A stretch of DNA of 60,868 nucleotides, counting the filler, from Trichosphaerium sp. ATCC 40318 (taxonomy: Eukaryota > Protista > Tubulinea), in the NCBI GenBank assembly GCA_038496445.1. It is 3 parts of 3 records of this genome, joined end to end, with 100 filler letters (N's around TTAATTAATTAA, not from the genome) between each part and the next. Parts side by side here need not be neighbours in the genome. Positions count along the whole stretch, not along the records: positions 20,447 to 37,080 come from JALMLS010000535.1; 2 more parts are not named here. One strand, given 5' to 3'. The position numbers and the translations under genes are program-made. The notes beneath the pieces are model-generated. The model was given only the letters and a program-made list of their open reading frames with translations. It did not search any database and was not told where the DNA came from. This document shows positions 7,008 to 34,617 of the stretch, piece by piece (position 1 is the first letter of the stretch; each line of letters starts with the position of its first letter).

Positions 7008-7936
7008 CAGGGCTGAAACTAAATAAGGCTTTTTTTGCAAAAGCCATTTTTTTGCCACCAAATACAGCCTTATTTTTCACCAAATTGCCTTGTTTTTGCC
7101 AAAAAAAATGAGCAAATATGAGGCATTGCCTTGTAATTTTGGGCTTTGAAGCCTCATATTTGGGCCAAATAGCAAGCAACTGGTTCACTAATTAGCCTTA
7201 AAATAGCCTGCATTGTTGGTCCAATAATGCCTCATTTTTTGTGCAACAATAAGGCATTTTTGCCCTCAATTTTTGGGCATAACCCAGGCACCATATACTC
7301 ATAAAACAAGGCTTTATATAGGCATACAATAGTGATTCATTTATTAAAGTACAGTACACAAAACACAAAAAACTGCAATGTCCTCCATGTGAAAAAAAAC
7401 CTTTAGCTAGAAAAAAAAATTAACAAATTATTGGTATAATTTTCGCGGACTGGAAAAATCGTTTAAAGTACCTATACTCCTGTTGTAGGTGCATTTGGGT
7501 GCTGCGGTTCGAATGGCGGTGGTTTCGTTAGAATCCATAAAATACTAAGCGCTTGGTGACGGCGTCTATATAAAACGTCAGTAGTAAATGAAAAAAAATG
7601 TTTAGGAAGTGTTGGTGTGGTGGAGACTTACCTTAAACCAATGTATCCTTAATGTACAATGTGTACACAACCAATGCCTAATTGGTGCCTGTAAATTTAA
7701 GGCTGGCAATGCATGAAAAAACTAGGGCAGGCATTGCCTAAAAAAAACAAGGCATTGCAACAATTAAGGCATGGCCCAACAAAGCCTTATTTCAATGCCT
7801 GATTTTTGCCTTTTTTGCCATTGCCTTTGCAAAATCAGGCATTGCCATTTTTGCATGCCTGATTTTTGCCATCAATGCCTGATTTTAAAAAAATGCCTTC
7901 ATATTTAAGGCAAAGCCTTGTTTAGTTTCAGCCCTG
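7008..7936. mobile_element. Non-autonomous hAT-like element (MITE), 929 bp
   Basis: 25-bp TIRs CAGGGCTGAAACTAAAYAAGGCTTT with 1 mismatch; many subterminal AGGCA/TGCCT repeats (AATGCCTGATTTT near 7795-7885); no TSD. Confidence 0.85.
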
Positions 7937-21932: not shown

Positions 21933-22994
21933 TCATAGTGCTAAATCTACTTTTAGTGTTTTCAGATACTCATATGTCGTTGCTGTGCGTCGCAATTGTA
22001 GTATCTTTGCGCAGGAGAGATATTTAATCCAATCATTTGTTACATTTGTCTTCGATAAATCGATATTGTGCGCACTTGCAAGATATTTCATACTCTCTAT
22101 TGTGATACCTTTACAACCATAAAGATTGATAGTGTGTACACCAGACAAAGGTTTTATCCAATCATCTGTTGCATTTGTGCTTGACAAGTTGATGTAGTGT
22201 ACACCCGCAAGGCTGTTTATGCACTCTCTAGTGATACTTTTACAATTATAAAGAGTGATAGAGTGTACACCAGCCAAAGCTGAAACACCTTTATTAGTCA
22301 CTTTTGTACCACTTAAATTTATGGTATGAACGCCAGCTAAAGCTGAAATACCTGCATCTGTAATGAGCTCACATTTTTGTATATCTAATGAAATTACTCC
22401 TGATAAAGCAACCAAAACCTCATCGGTAGCTGAAGAGTTTGGTATACTGATATGTGGTATCCCAGCAAATGTTTTGATAAGTTCTGAGGTCAGATTTGGA
22501 ACTCCATACAAGTGGATGGACTGGAGGTGTGCCACTAGCGGCATTAATCCTGTGTCTGTGATACTGTGACAGTTCTTTAATGATAAGTGATGTACACCAC
22601 AAATAGACTTCAATCCGTCATCTGTTAGCAAGATACTCTTGGTTCTAAACTTAAGTGTAAGGTGTAGGACACCTGAAAGCATACTAAGATCTGAGTCTGA
22701 AGGTGACTGGACGCTTATATTTGTATTTTTTAATAATGGACTGCCACAAAGACGTGAACAATGAGAAGTTGCTTCATATGCGGGTATATTAATTCTCTTG
22801 TATCCCACGTGATTATGTATAACTTCATATAGTCGGTTGCAGCTTTGGGAAACAGAAAATCGATCATAGCGCCGCAAGCATTTGAATAAGTGAGCGAGTA
22901 TCTCGTTTGGTATGTCTAATAGCTCAGCGTTGATATCGCTATTACTAGAGAGAATTTTATTAAGCAGTTCCACTTCTTGTATACACGCACACAT
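21933..22994 (-). CDS. Intronless F-box/LRR-repeat protein (353 aa)
   Basis: LLDIPNEILAHLFKCL F-box followed by repeats of ITDAGISALAGVHTINL. Confidence 0.9.
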   Translation of the reverse strand: MCACIQEVELLNKILSSNSDINAELLDIPNEILAHLFKCLRRYDRFSVSQSCNRLYEVIHNHVGYKRINIPAYEATSHCSRLCGSPLLKNTNISVQSPSDSDLSMLSGVLHLTLKFRTKSILLTDDGLKSICGVHHLSLKNCHSITDTGLMPLVAHLQSIHLYGVPNLTSELIKTFAGIPHISIPNSSATDEVLVALSGVISLDIQKCELITDAGISALAGVHTINLSGTKVTNKGVSALAGVHSITLYNCKSITRECINSLAGVHYINLSSTNATDDWIKPLSGVHTINLYGCKGITIESMKYLASAHNIDLSKTNVTNDWIKYLSCAKILQLRRTATTYEYLKTLKVDLAL

Positions 22995-25873: not shown

Positions 25874-26105
25874 TTGTTTTTTTGTTCTTCGCTTTTTACG
25901 CTTTCACCAGTGTCTATTGTCCGTTTCAGTCAAGTTGGTCAAAATTTAACTGGTTGTGCACGAAAGTTAGTTATCTGGTGAAAATTTCTAAATTTCTATG
26001 CTAACCGGTTAACTGACGAAAATATTCAAATTTCAAGGTGATGCGGAAGCCAGAGAACACTTCCAAGAAAAAAAAAAACCCACGTGTACAAAATAACAAA
26101 TTTAT

Positions 26106-27671
26106 TTATTTTAACTCTTTTAAAGACAAAATCTGCGCCTTCAACAATGCCAACTGCTCATGTAATGCTTGTGCTTGGTATTCACGTTGTTTTATTAAGT
26201 CAGCATGAACACAGTGTTTTTGCCAGCGAAAGAACCCACAGGTGCCACGTGGACAATTGTAGTACCACTTTCCTGGGTTTTTTTCGCTGTTACTAAGCTT
26301 TGCGATAATTGTTAGCCCACAATAACATGTTCGCTTTTCTGGTGCTTTAATGGGTATAGCCGCTAAAAGAGGTAAGTTTAGAGTAGTTGTTGATAAAAAA
26401 CATACGAATGCTAGGTAGCATATTCAATGCACCTAATTCATTTGTAGGATACAGCGATGGCGTAGTAGTGTCCAAAGATAGCGTGTTAGCATCTGTAGGA
26501 TATAGCGATGGCTTTGTGGTGTCCACATTAACTGGTGATGAGATTTGTGGCATCGTGGTGCGTTTGGGTTTTCTATACAACCTTTTTAGCGCATATCAAA
26601 AATTACTGACATACTTTGCAGGTTGTGGTAAGAGTGGCGTTGATTTTCTTTTGCGCGTCTTAAAGTCACTTGCCTTTGCTGGACGATAGCTTGATAGCGT
26701 AAGCAATAAGAAGTGAAAAATATAGGTACCTAACTTGTGGATCATCTTCATCCAAAGTTAAATCTATTTGTAGTATTTGTGTGCTGCTACAAACGTTAAT
26801 AAAGTATTTTACACAAAAATATTTATTTCGTAGAATACCTTGGTTCGAAGAGCTTTGACACACTTGCTTGTTGTGCAGCTTCAACTAATAGTTGAAGTGG
26901 AGAAGAGCCATCAGTGATTTTAGGCTGATCAACGAGAGCTTGAATCACAGTGGCATCAGAAAGAGCAGAAGTCACTCCAATGGGCAAACCGGTTTGTGTT
27001 TTTGCTTTATGCTTGATTTTTGGTCCACGAAATCCAGCTGAAAAGTGTTAACGCAATAAAAGAAATTAAATATGTACTTTTTTTTTCCATTTCTTTTTTT
27101 CGGTGTTCTGATGCCTTTTTTCTTAACGTAGCAGTAATATTGTTGAACAAATGCATTCGCTCACTCTCTTCTTTTTTTCCTGTAAGACCACATATTTTTT
27201 CAAAAGGTGGTACACCAGCAAACATGGCTGCTTGTTTTTGAAGGTCAGACTTCAGTTTGGCTGTGCTGGTTACAAGTTTTCCTTGCAAACGTTCAATCTA
27301 CAAAATTTGTGTTAACATTGTTGGAGAGGAAGTTTGGTACCTGCTGCTTTGTCTTTGAGACATCAGCGTCTACTCTATTTTGTCTTCGGACAAGATCAGC
27401 ATGGATGGCATTTTGCAGCATGTTTTGTCTTGTAGTTGCTTCGACAGTGTGCCCTAAAACAATTTTAGATTTCGTGTAAATTTTTTTGTTACTCAATACA
27501 TTTAGGGTGTTTACAATGCTCAGGCCCAGGACATGGTATCCTGTAACCGTTTTCGTCTGTTGGGCACTTGTGGGTAAGTTTTCCGTAGGCATTTGGCTTT
27601 CTATGTTCCGACTGTTTGTTGTGACACTTGCCACAAGTCCTACCACTGCGTTGAGTTGCTTTTCTTGGCAT
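26106..27671 (-). CDS. Transposon-borne accessory protein: N-terminal Cys/His cluster, coiled coil, C-terminal GRF zinc finger
   Basis: First exon TCGKCH...HKCP...PCPGPEHCKH; last exon translates to TCYCGLTIIAKLSNSEKNPGKWYYNCPRGTCGFFRW (zf-GRF pattern) plus a short helix; several GT-AG introns. Confidence 0.8.
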
Positions 27672-27686
27672 CGTTGTTTTGAACTA

Positions 27687-27698
27687 TGACTTAAGTCA
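27687..27698. promoter_or_regulatory. 12-bp palindrome TGACTTAAGTCA between the two start codons (candidate bidirectional promoter element)
   Basis: Perfect palindrome within the 29-nt gap between the divergent ATGs. Confidence 0.4.
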
Positions 27699-27700
27699 CA

Positions 27701-28924
27701 ATGGAAAGCCTACCAACGTATCCACACCACGAAAATGTTTTATTGGGGCAGTCTATGGTTAAACATGGTATAAAAAGCACCATACAACATTTTCAAGCAA
27801 CACGTGGAAGAGCAAATTATTGGAAAAAAAAAACAACTGACGCTACATTTCACAGTTCAAACCATGGTACTAATCAAAACAGTGTTAATTAGTGGTTTTG
27901 ATTAATAAATAGGAGGAAAACGATGGAGCAAGTTTTCTGATGGTACAGCATTAACTAAAAGCCTAAATCTGTTGCTTAAATCATAATTAGAAGAGATGAA
28001 AGTTGTTTGGACTTTGATTTTTATTGTTTATAACAATGACTGTCGTACACCTTTTGGAGAGTATGTTACCTATATTAACAGTGTAATTGCTCCTCAAAGT
28101 ATTTCTGTTCCTTGGCTATCTCGTTTATTTAGATCAATTGGATGGACATGGAAAGTACGTAAATTGTTGTTTACAACATGTTTAAACCTAACTAAACAAC
28201 TTAGGATGTCGAACACCGACAGCTACGAAAATACACTGCAGAGAATATTGCACACTATCAGCGTTATGTCACGTGCATATTAAATGTAGATCCACAGCAT
28301 TTAAAGTACGCTGATGAAGCACACTTTATTTCTCGGGGTATTTTTTTTTTTCACAAATGGCAATTAATTTTTTGTTCAGCTCTCTATAAAAAACGTGGTC
28401 TAAGTCCTGCTGGTGTTAAAATACGAATAATAGAGAGTGCCCCCATCGACCTATCCTGCACCATCACAATCATGACGTCTGTTGTTCCGGGCAAGGTACT
28501 AAACTATTTTTGTGTGATATTAAATTAAACTAAGTATTAAAACAAGGCACCTGTTGTAGCATCATACCGTACTAATTCAAACACACAATATGATTGGGCG
28601 ACCTTTGTTGTGTACCTTTTAGAACACAATCATTTGGTTGCTGGAGATTATTTTGTGGTGGACAATGCTCGTGTCCACAGTGCCAAAGAAACTTTTTCAG
28701 AGATATATGAAGCTTGTGCTCTACGAGGAGTACACTACATATTTCTGCCAAAGTATTCTCCGGAACTCAACCCATGTGAACTTGTTTTCGCTCACATAAA
28801 GAACCATTTGCGTTACAGACGCCGAAATGATACTTTTTGGTATGAAATAGCCAAAACAATGGCTACTGTAACTAGAGAGCTTGTAGAAAGTTTCTATGAT
28901 CATTGTGTACACATGCGTTTTTAA
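27701..28924 (+). CDS. IS630/Tc1-like DDE transposase, about 5 introns
   Basis: KYADEAHF (D1), VVDNARVH (D2), FLPKYSPELNPCELVF (E); 38 residues between D2 and E by hand count. Confidence 0.93.
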
Positions 28925-29413
28925 AATAAATAAAATTTGTTATTTTGTACACGTGGGTTTTTTTTTTTTCTTGGAAGTGTTCTCTGGCTTCCGCATCACC
29001 TTGAAATTTGAATATTTTCGTCAGTTAACCGGTTAGCATAGAAATTTAGAAATTTTCACCAGATAACTAACTTTCGTGCACAACCAGTTAAATTTTGACC
29101 AACTTGACTGAAACGGACAATATCTTACCCGGAGGTGGCGATTTTTCTAGTACTTGCCACAGAGTACAACATAAATGCCTCCAAACAACGTCATCGCCGC
29201 AAAGTGAGTGCCTTTTGAAAAACATTAGCCATTTTCGGCGTTTGGACTCTCTGACGCGGATTAAACACTTTACCAGTATTGAGAGCAAGTCGCAAAAGAC
29301 AGTATACTTTTTGGATAACCAATACGAAATATTATCTCTAAAGACAGCTCATCGGGTAGGTTATTCAATGGCATGTGTTTCCAAGGACCAACGCTATTTA
29401 TAAAGACGTTGAC

Positions 29414-32677: not shown

Positions 32678-34617
32678 ATGGACAACCCATACGCCACTTG
32701 TTATAGTAGGCGTTTCGATGACAATAAGAAATACAAAACTTCCAGGATTCAAAGCAGTTTATCTGGCTCAAAAGGTTACAAATGGCAGAAAAACCTCCGC
32801 AAACAGTTTTCATGTCGTAACCGCGACCTTAGTCATGTTGAAAAGACTGTACATGGAAATGTTACTAAATCAGCTCTCTAACCTCTCCTAGATTACGTTT
32901 CTACGCTCTCCTTTCTTAAACGACGAAATACAGGATGTACGTGCCATGTTCAATCAAAACCTCCCGTTTGTACATGTAAAGCGGCCAAACAACCCAGAAA
33001 TCATCGACCACCGCGTAATAATATATTTAAAGGCAGACGAACCAAAACGGCCACAACCAAACCCAACTGACGTTGCATCGCAACAGCACGCATTCCACGT
33101 AGCTGCAATAAAGAGAGAACCTCGCAAACTGCCACCACGTATACGCTCAACGCCGCGTACGTCCTTTTTATTATTTTTTCAAAAAACCCTCCAAAACCTT
33201 GTTTAACGAATCTTAGCTACTGTTGCTAAGCAACAACGCCCTAAGACCAACAAACCTAAGCCTGCTAAACCTATGAGGTACGTTCTACATCCAGTCTTCA
33301 TCACGTGATTATTGCAACAAGTTAACAGTCATTTTTTAAAGCGGTTTACAATCACTTCGTGCAACCCCTAAGCGCTCCAAAACATCTTTAAAACGTAAGC
33401 GTCGTCCTACCGAACCTCCAAAGAAAGCTACCCAAGAACCACAGATTCTTTTGGAGCCTAAAACTGAGGTTGACTTGATGGACATCATCGAAGATATCGA
33501 TGAAGAAGATGAGGTATCTGTTGTACCTGACAGTTGCTCTTCTTCTTTTGTTCCGGTACACTTATTATATCATGTGTTAGTTTTTAACAAATATAAGCGT
33601 TCGAGGCCAGAGCCACCCATTCGCGTCACCAGACACACTCCTCTAGTTAATTCTGGTCAGTTAACAGGACCTGGTTTGATGAGCGTATCAAGTCAAAAAC
33701 TAATTACTGAAATGAAAACAAAACATCAAACTGAAAAGACACAAATGAGCGAGGCGTTATCCCAATATCAACGAAAGATTAATGAACTAGAAGGTACAAG
33801 TGTGCAGCGTAATTAAGAATACCACTAAACTAACAATGATTTAGAAGCACTTAACAGACAGAGGTTGCAAAAAGCAGCTCCTTCTATCACTGTTAAGAAA
33901 GAACCGGAGTCTTTGTCTATGGCTATGTCTGCAACGAGTAATGTAGTTAAGAGAAAGACTATAAATATTAAAAAGGAACCAAGAGTATCAAATATATCGC
34001 CTGAAAAGAAAAAGAAGATTGTTCTTGATTTGACACAAGAAAATGAACCACCGAAGAAAAAGCAAAAAAAAACACAGAGTGCATCACCAGATATCGGACC
34101 TTTTTTGACATATGAAGGTGTTGGAGACTTACCAATGCTATCAGATTCTTATGGTTCAAATAAGTCCTATGTTGACGGTACACAGAACAAGAAAAAGACG
34201 CCGAAAACAACACCGAAAAAAACGGTCAAAGAAGCTGGATCCAAGTTGAAAAACAACTCGTTCGATGATTCTGGGATAAGTGACTTTGATCCAAACTTCA
34301 CACCTGTTCGTCCCAAGCCTTCTCAAGACAAAGGTTATAATAACGACAAACTATCTAACGATATTATGGAAGATGTCTCAAATGATAGCGAAGACAAGGA
34401 TGTCAGTATTGAAAAAAAAGATAAAGCTAATAGGAAGAAGAAAGATTCGCCAGAATCTGATTCGTCTGAACTAGTCACTAAGTTTAACCTACGTAAAACA
34501 TTTGGTGATCAAGACTTGATAGAGTCTTTGGATAGTGTAGATAGTCCTATTACTAAGCAAAATAATAATATAGACGAAGTACAGTATGACTCAGATGGAG
34601 ATCCACAAGTTTGGTAG
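32678..34617 (+). CDS. Hypothetical low-complexity K/P/S/D-rich protein (multi-exon, possibly nuclear)
   Basis: Collinear + strand ORFs separated by GT-AG introns; PPKKKQKK NLS-like motif; no domain recognised. Confidence 0.6.

Follow-up and report, generated by a model that had tools for sequence, protein, structure and literature searches.

A two-gene IS630/Tc1/mariner transposon with a GRF-finger accessory gene in Trichosphaerium, and related elements with a divergent second gene

The window analysed in the present work is a stretch of 60,868 nucleotides (nt) of DNA from Trichosphaerium sp. ATCC 40318 (assembly GCA_038496445.1), and the subject of the analysis is a DNA transposon that lies in the 16.6-kb piece of the window derived from record JALMLS010000535.1. 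Positions 25917-29120, counted along the window, are occupied by an intact 3.2-kb cut-and-paste element which is bounded on each side by a long inverted repeat and a TA dinucleotide (Table 1). The two arms of the terminal inverted repeat (TIR) are 198 and 200 nt long, and alignment of the arms shows that, as an initial annotation of the sequence had stated, they differ in homopolymer lengths only (A11 versus A12, plus one extra T); these two length differences could conceivably be assembly errors. Each arm contains three imperfect direct repeats spaced approximately 38-40 nt apart (at 25936, 25970 and 26008 in the left arm), an arrangement reminiscent of Tc1-like elements with long TIRs, in which the sites bound by the transposase are repeated. 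The TA duplication at the TIRs, which is also found in the related elements L004 and L018 described below, and a DDE_3 transposase with an intact catalytic triad are both features of the IS630/Tc1/mariner group, and the element belongs to that group and is probably autonomous and recently active.

The transposase gene lies on the plus strand and consists of six exons, which were placed by eye and are separated by introns of 42-51 nt. When a profile of 338 positions was built from 19 full-length relatives found with P0220, the six exons proved to be colinear on profile positions 20-331, and the gene model is considered complete because all six exons align in order on the profile. The match of exon 6 to Pfam DDE_3 (53 bits, cutoff 28.6), together with this colinearity, bears out the spliced DDE transposase of the initial annotation. 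The triad is intact (D 28313, D 28661 and E 28778), and the 38 residues between its last two members give the spacing DD38E. Alignment places exons 1-3 in the N-terminal portion of the profile, while the match to Pfam HTH_33 is weak (E 0.2); the solved sequences nearest to the transposase are those of SETMAR/mariner and Sleeping Beauty, again with weak matches. The splice donors in both genes of the transposon (27867-28546 and 26363-27499) are mostly GTAC.. or GTAT.. rather than GTAAG or GTGAG, and the introns are 40-51 nt long, a combination which may be the host's own splice signature.

The element carries a second intact spliced gene inside its TIRs, and it therefore departs from the single-gene state that is usual in IS630/Tc1/mariner elements. 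This second gene lies on the minus strand and runs through eight exons from an ATG at 27671 to a TAA at 26108-26106, giving 1260 nt, or 419 codons and a stop; its start codon and that of the transposase stand head to head, 30 bp apart. The introns between them are 40-46 nt long, follow the GT-AG rule and keep consistent phases. The N-terminal Cys/His cluster reported in the initial annotation is present in exon 1 (TCGKCHNKQSEH...HKCP...CPGPEHCKHPK), and the reported P/T-rich linker with a duplication of about 51 bp is likewise present, with 36-nt copies at 26439 and 26490 that are 51 nt apart and 86% identical. The coiled coil that had been proposed fared less evenly, since a helix is confidently predicted by AlphaFold2 for the last 32 residues, whereas exons 2-3 were assessed as helical by eye alone. 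A Pfam scan of exons 1-7 of the second gene detected no domain; searches and folds of both genes were run exon by exon, which limits the sensitivity attained for the second gene.

If the second frame has been mis-modelled or is decaying, then what appears to be a gene is either a chance spliced frame or a dead one. The splice sites were placed by hand without RNA evidence, several of the donors are of the unusual GTAC.. type, and the opposite strand also yields a long spliced frame of 1049 nt. A search for the longest spliced frame by dynamic programming, using no prior model, nevertheless recovered the same ATG and 1265 coding nt, compared with 616 +/- 141 nt and a maximum of 890 nt in 60 dinucleotide shuffles. 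The seven introns also fall into one size class and keep their phases, the same GTAC/GTAT donors are used in the introns of the transposase, whose model is confirmed by homology, and a domain that is significant in Pfam lies at the end of the frame. A chance or dead frame is accordingly regarded as very improbable, and the divergent spliced gene of the initial annotation stands.

The domain at the end of the frame is a GRF zinc finger. Exon 8 matches Pfam Zn_ribbon_GRF (PF06839) at 30.4 bits (cutoff 25.9), and its motif CxC...NPGKWYYNC...CGFFRW has four Cys ligands and the aromatic signature of GRF fingers. The alignment shows no variation at C12, C14, C36 or W46 and hardly any at C41. The exon also matches the GRF domains of NEIL3 in the PDB by sequence, and its AlphaFold2 model (predicted local distance difference test score, pLDDT, 88.5) contains strands followed by a 32-residue C-terminal helix. 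The top Foldseek matches of this model are 7jl5 and 7omk (root-mean-square deviation 2.2-2.7 A), 6uca and 5u6z, which are GRF structures of NEIL3, ZCCHC4 and APE2, with E-values that are weak for so small a domain. On the strength of this model exon 8 is a genuine GRF fold, the three-stranded zinc ribbon known from NEIL3 and APE2, and the initial annotation was correct both in recognizing the C-terminal finger and in remarking that none of the open reading frames (ORFs) in its track shows it.

The inner edge of the left TIR provides the GRF gene with its last codons, its stop and an AATAAA signal. The palindromic sequence TTAAAATAAATAAA, present at the inner edges of the TIRs, can be read on either strand as a stop and AATAAA, and both genes end there. 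That both genes stop at a symmetric TIR edge indicates an integrated design, contrary to what would be expected of recent cargo, and it therefore bears on the alternative that this copy made a one-off capture of a host GRF gene or gene fragment which is useless to the element. Such a capture would be in keeping with the availability of only one copy of the exact element and with the closest database GRF fingers being those of plant proteins, which are 35-55% identical inside the finger. The gene's stop and poly(A) signal, on the other hand, lie inside the TIR in symmetry with those of the transposase. An all-against-all search with the GRF exon returned 169 matches, the best being small plant GRF proteins, and each has in common with the exon the GRF finger alone; none of the 169 shares any other exon of the second gene, so that no host-like homologue of the non-GRF exons is present among the GRF proteins found. 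A near-identical host GRF gene, one of the signs against a two-gene family that had been named in the initial annotation, is absent among 1.84 billion representatives, and within the reach of the collections none of the signs named there was encountered.

Another such sign, copies without the second gene, can be assessed from the relatives of the element. A search with the transposase exon retrieved 67 exon-sized relatives with 35-59% identity from metagenomes and Logan assemblies. The nearest relative for which a complete element is available, L004, is a Logan contig of 2628 bp from SRR22388309 which contains an element of approximately 2.57 kb with TA on both sides. Its termini (TTGTTCGTTTCAC...) have 18 of 22 terminal bases in common with those in the window (TTGTCCGTTTCAG...), and its transposase, on the plus strand, is 50% identical to that of the window in exon 6 (E 1e-38). 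On the minus strand, the first ORF beside the transposase begins MSAAACSYCHH..., which is a Cys/His cluster, and the far end encodes CCYCG...NRGKRFKTC...CNYFRW, a GRF finger by a local GRF profile (E 7e-9). The layout is therefore that of the window, with divergent genes, a Cys/His start and a C-terminal GRF finger, and the second gene is retained in the same place and orientation. A 395-residue gene recorded at 147-1334 of this contig in the source collection was rejected, as it follows an incorrect frame interrupted by many stops, and the true coding segments lie in another frame. A contig from a sister run, L024, is 100% identical to L004 over 1068 bp as far as the terminal ...AACAA and TA and then diverges; it represents a second insertion site, from which it follows that the GRF-carrying relative is or was mobile. 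Since related elements from uncultured eukaryotes carry the same second gene, the gene is taken to be part of the family and not cargo picked up by accident. Preservation of layout and finger in L004 despite a transposase only 50% identical, and the more distant loci described below, leave a one-off capture disfavoured, with very little probability remaining to it.

Five more distant lineages (L018, L013, L005, L008 and L023) also have a minus-strand gene with a CxxCH motif directly upstream of a plus-strand transposase. The first of these lineages is represented by three insertions (L018, L019 and L020) of a two-gene element which is 3.8 kb long and has TIRs of 188 nt and TA ends, and in L013-L017 a minus-strand gene adjoins the plus-strand transposase upstream, as it does in the window. 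In the clade, CxxCH is succeeded, after a gap of 5-6 residues, by H or D and is in most cases preceded by G and basic residues. In all seven lineages a CxxCH lies on the minus strand at most 800 nt upstream of the point where the transposase starts, which is a further point against a one-off capture, whereas in shuffled sequences it arises at a rate of 0.1-2.6% per locus. L005 and L008 resemble one another at the protein level both in the exon with CGxCH (E 1e-27) and in an exon encoding a RanBP2-type finger (E 2e-19), which is located at the C-terminus after a proline-rich linker (27.6 and 25.7 bits in Pfam). No TIRs were found at L005, L008 or L013, and the L005 and L008 loci could be old ones or the result of domestication. 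Downstream of the transposase-like locus of L005, at 7481-7811, there is a near-perfect 160-nt hairpin (94% complementary, with an 11-nt loop), which may be another small inverted-repeat element.

Some further observations concern these relatives. The second gene of L018 (1201-2013, minus strand) begins MPKGRPRK, a canonical AT-hook, and contains a tandem duplication of an acidic 24-residue unit that parallels the duplicated linker of the window gene; the intergenic spacer of L018 (2057-2168) is a palindromic (CAAAA)n/(TTTTG)n microsatellite, while the spacer in the window is 29 bp long. A look-alike search of the ESM Atlas with the L018 second gene gave scores of at most 0.81 and was uninformative. 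A GRF finger was suspected in L013 (KCVFFSW followed by a helix) and was given no support by the GRF profile. Scans of metagenome and viral loci with the transposase exon yielded L001-L003, which are distant or irrelevant, and a weak GRF-like match in the GC-rich L001 is attributed to chance. In P0242-P0253 many relatives are unbroken transposase ORFs of 290-420 residues on contigs of 1-2 kb, as would be expected if they were spliced transcripts sampled in metatranscriptomes; this would be a hint of expression in the clade.

There are several points which weigh against reading these loci as one family with a conserved accessory gene. Only one copy of the element from the genome of the window could be seen, so that co-mobility of the two genes in that genome is putative. 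The motif is in part post hoc, as it was defined after the window, L004, L013 and L018 had been viewed; the clean predictions are consequently L005/L008 and L023, which together amount to roughly 2e-5. In L004 the GRF finger scores 21.7 bits (E 2e-4) in Pfam, under the gathering cutoff, and the spliced frame of the second gene is no longer than expected by chance. L018, L013 and L023, the last of which is truncated, have no recognisable C-terminal finger, and the GRF finger therefore cannot be essential to the clade. No TIRs were found around the RanBP2 exon of L005 and L008, so that its location inside a mobile element is presumptive. Pairwise BLAST comparisons of N-terminal regions between lineages were not significant, so far as the second genes outside the finger are concerned the features common to different lineages are a short motif and the architecture only, and the AlphaFold2 model of the N-terminal Cys/His exon of the window gene (pLDDT 52) offers no usable fold. 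With these points taken into account, it is still considered highly probable that the two-gene family is genuine and that its second gene is conserved. The two-component family envisaged in the initial annotation is thus upheld as regards the retention of the second gene, in L004 and in the CxxCH lineages, and has to be qualified as regards the GRF finger, which is not universal.

Table 1. Positions of the parts of the transposon along the window.
Feature	Position	Strand	Remarks
Left TA target-site duplication	25915-25916	.	TA immediately outside the TIR; counterpart at 29121-29122
Left terminal inverted repeat, 198 nt	25917-26114	+	Subterminal direct repeats 25936-47, 25970-96, 26008-34
GRF-gene exon 8: GRF finger ~26220-26330, C-terminal helix ~26112-26207, stop TAA 26108-26106	26106-26362	-	
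GRF-gene exon 7: basic start, then P/T-rich linker with tandem 51-bp (17-residue) duplication 26439-26525	26406-26572	-	
GRF-gene exon 6, basic (KTRKRK)	26615-26689	-	Consistent in frame and splice phase
GRF-gene exon 5, acidic (LDEDD)	26730-26786	-	
GRF-gene exon 4, starts GFRGPKIKHK, AT-hook-like	26839-27037	-	By eye only
GRF-gene exon 3, helix-prone, charged	27078-27297	-	Helical character by eye
GRF-gene exon 2, helix-prone, charged	27341-27453	-	Helical character by eye
GRF-gene exon 1: ATG 27671, Cys/His cluster, clade-wide CGxCH motif at 27635	27500-27671	-	Alternative donor 27515
Spacer between divergent start codons, 29 bp	27672-27700	.	Inside imperfect palindrome 27678-27707
Transposase exon 1, putative N-terminal DNA-binding region	27701-27866	+	Profile positions 20-63
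Transposase exon 2 (GKRWSKFSD)	27913-27942	+	Profile positions 65-72; weak score, exon short
Transposase exon 3, putative second helix-turn-helix region	27991-28154	+	Profile positions 78-126; weak HTH_33 match
Transposase exon 4, first catalytic D 28313-28315	28205-28337	+	Profile positions 129-170, E 1e-15
Transposase exon 5	28380-28495	+	Profile positions 172-206
Transposase exon 6: second D 28661-28663, E 28778-28780, stop 28922-28924	28547-28924	+	Profile positions 210-331; Pfam DDE_3
Right terminal inverted repeat, 200 nt	28921-29120	-	Arm-to-arm alignment
Right TA target-site duplication	29121-29122	.	Mirrors the left TA

The 16.6-kb piece around the transposon has a G+C content of 34-42% and contains no further copy or fragment of the element, and tRNA and Rfam scans of the piece gave no match. 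Exact look-ups with the products of two ORFs of the window were likewise empty in the collection consulted. On the minus strand at 21933-22994 there is an intronless host ORF of 353 residues with an F-box and leucine-rich repeats (Pfam F-box-like and LRR_6), whose nearest relatives are protist-transcriptome proteins (MMETSP, EukProt) and metagenome proteins with at most 46% identity. Two adjacent plus-strand ORFs of 121 and 250 residues at 33451-34617, which are rich in K, E and S and have no Pfam match, are probably exons of a low-complexity host gene.

The second protein is modular, with an N-terminal CxxCH cluster that is conserved in the clade, helical and basic segments, a low-complexity linker and a small C-terminal zinc ribbon, and the ribbon is of the GRF type in the element of the window and its nearest relative and of the RanBP2/NZF type in another lineage. 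The explanation that best accounts for the observations overall, and which is moderately favoured, is an intact two-gene IS630/Tc1/mariner transposon whose modular accessory protein would act as an adaptor. Tc1/mariner transposition leaves staggered breaks and flanking gaps that must be dealt with by host repair. Under the mechanism proposed here, the DD38E transposase encoded by the first gene would bind the long TIRs with their subterminal repeats and insert the element at TA, while the N-terminal part of the adaptor would contact the transposase or the element ends and its helices would mediate multimerization. The GRF finger would then hold the complex on single-stranded DNA (ssDNA), either at the gaps produced by excision and integration or at replication forks, and more generally an exchangeable C-terminal ribbon would give the complex a hold on ssDNA, on gaps, on forks or on ubiquitin marks. 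The adaptor would in this way couple transposition to host gap repair or replication, and would help with repair or with the timing of transposition.

Through their GRF fingers, NEIL3 and APE2 bind to ssDNA and forks, and NEIL3 is recruited to stalled forks by way of ubiquitin, which its NZF finger binds (PMC9561275). The two ribbon types that alternate within the clade, GRF and RanBP2/NZF, are those by which NEIL3 reaches stalled forks. The specific function of tethering transposition to ssDNA, gaps or forks, the most likely one for the second protein, is nonetheless put forward only tentatively, with a probability well below even. Somewhat more doubtful again is the broader proposal that a widespread clade in microbial eukaryotes depends on the adaptor and that its swappable ribbon (GRF for ssDNA, RanBP2/NZF for ubiquitin or single-stranded RNA) targets transposition to forks and repair intermediates. 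The role in targeting, repair or anti-silencing that the initial annotation had suggested for the second protein is likewise an inference.

A different role for the second protein is suggested by the arrangement of the start codons, which stand head to head 30 bp apart and make co-regulation of the two genes likely. The protein may be a regulator, which either represses or times the transposase from the shared 30-bp promoter region or counteracts silencing in the manner of VANC of the plant VANDAL elements, in which case its zinc modules would bind RNA or chromatin. The gene evolves fast outside a short motif, which would be expected of such an arms-race factor, RNA and ubiquitin are further ligands open to ribbons of the RanBP2 and GRF types (for NZF and ubiquitin, PMC9561275), and some plant elements are documented to encode accessory proteins that act against silencing (PMC12973397). 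No specific observation speaks against a regulator. Every characterised GRF finger binds ssDNA and occurs in a repair or replication protein (PMC9561275), and no silencing-related domain was found. A regulatory role is judged improbable, if far less so than a captured or chance gene, and an adaptor is retained as the preferred interpretation.

Among known systems, the element is most readily compared with the DD38E family Intruder, which it resembles in its TA duplication, the 38-residue D-E spacing, a transposase of approximately 330-340 residues and long TIRs (up to 272 bp in Intruder) (PMC7731502). Intruder elements, however, are 1.5-1.7 kb in length, have one ORF and are known only from animals (PMC7731502), whereas the element described here is 3.2 kb in length and has two spliced genes, and environmental and protist-like data are the source of its relatives. 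The common spacing may be a coincidence, the two having been compared by description. The TBE and Tec elements of ciliates offer a second parallel, since they are Tc1/IS630-group elements with extra ORFs, one of which encodes a zinc-finger protein in TBE (PMC7325037). They have three ORFs, a DD34E triad, a distribution restricted to ciliates, TIRs that are telomere-like (as in TBE) or approximately 700 bp long, and, in Tec, a tyrosine recombinase (PMC7325037); the present element instead has two divergent genes, a DD38E triad and TIRs without telomeric repeats, and neither a GRF finger nor such a layout is present in TBE/Tec.

A functional parallel is provided by plant transposons, in which accessory proteins bind the transposases of MULE, PIF and CACTA elements and Zf-GRF recurs in the non-transposase proteins of active TIR transposons (PMC12973397). 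In MURB of MuDR, the Myb-like ORF of PIF/Harbinger and ORF2 of CACTA, as is proposed here, a second element-encoded protein works with the transposase (PMC12973397). These plant elements belong to other superfamilies with other target duplications, and they show no homology to the second gene outside the finger. PIF/Harbinger in particular has a 3-bp TAA/TTA duplication, a DDE_Tnp_4 transposase and a Myb/SANT-like protein, where the present element has TA, DDE_3 and no Myb domain, and the likeness would be one of functional analogy only. The GRF domains of NEIL3, APE2, TOP3A and ZCCHC4 have the same zinc-ribbon fold and motif but are parts of host enzymes of repair, topology or methylation, while the finger described here is located on a non-enzymatic protein encoded by a transposon. 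NEIL3 combines GRF and NZF/RanBP2-type fingers, which are the two ribbon types that alternate in the second gene of the clade. No paper linking GRF fingers to Tc1/mariner or IS630 elements was found in the literature, and Tc1/IS630-like elements that form a clade with two genes, one of them encoding a modular accessory protein, are apparently undescribed.

Tc1/mariner elements figure in textbooks as the example of a transposon for which its own transposase suffices, and it is because of this self-sufficiency that they move between kingdoms and serve as gene-delivery tools (Sleeping Beauty, Mos1). A second gene kept across deep divergence would show that helper-dependent transposition evolved in this group too, as it did in MULE, CACTA and PIF/Harbinger elements, and dependence on an adaptor, if true, would separate the clade from the self-sufficient Tc1/mariner elements. 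Outside plants, the clade would also exemplify the unexplained association of GRF fingers with accessory genes of transposons, and it would offer a compact system in which to study how a transposon exploits the gap repair or the replication structures of its host.

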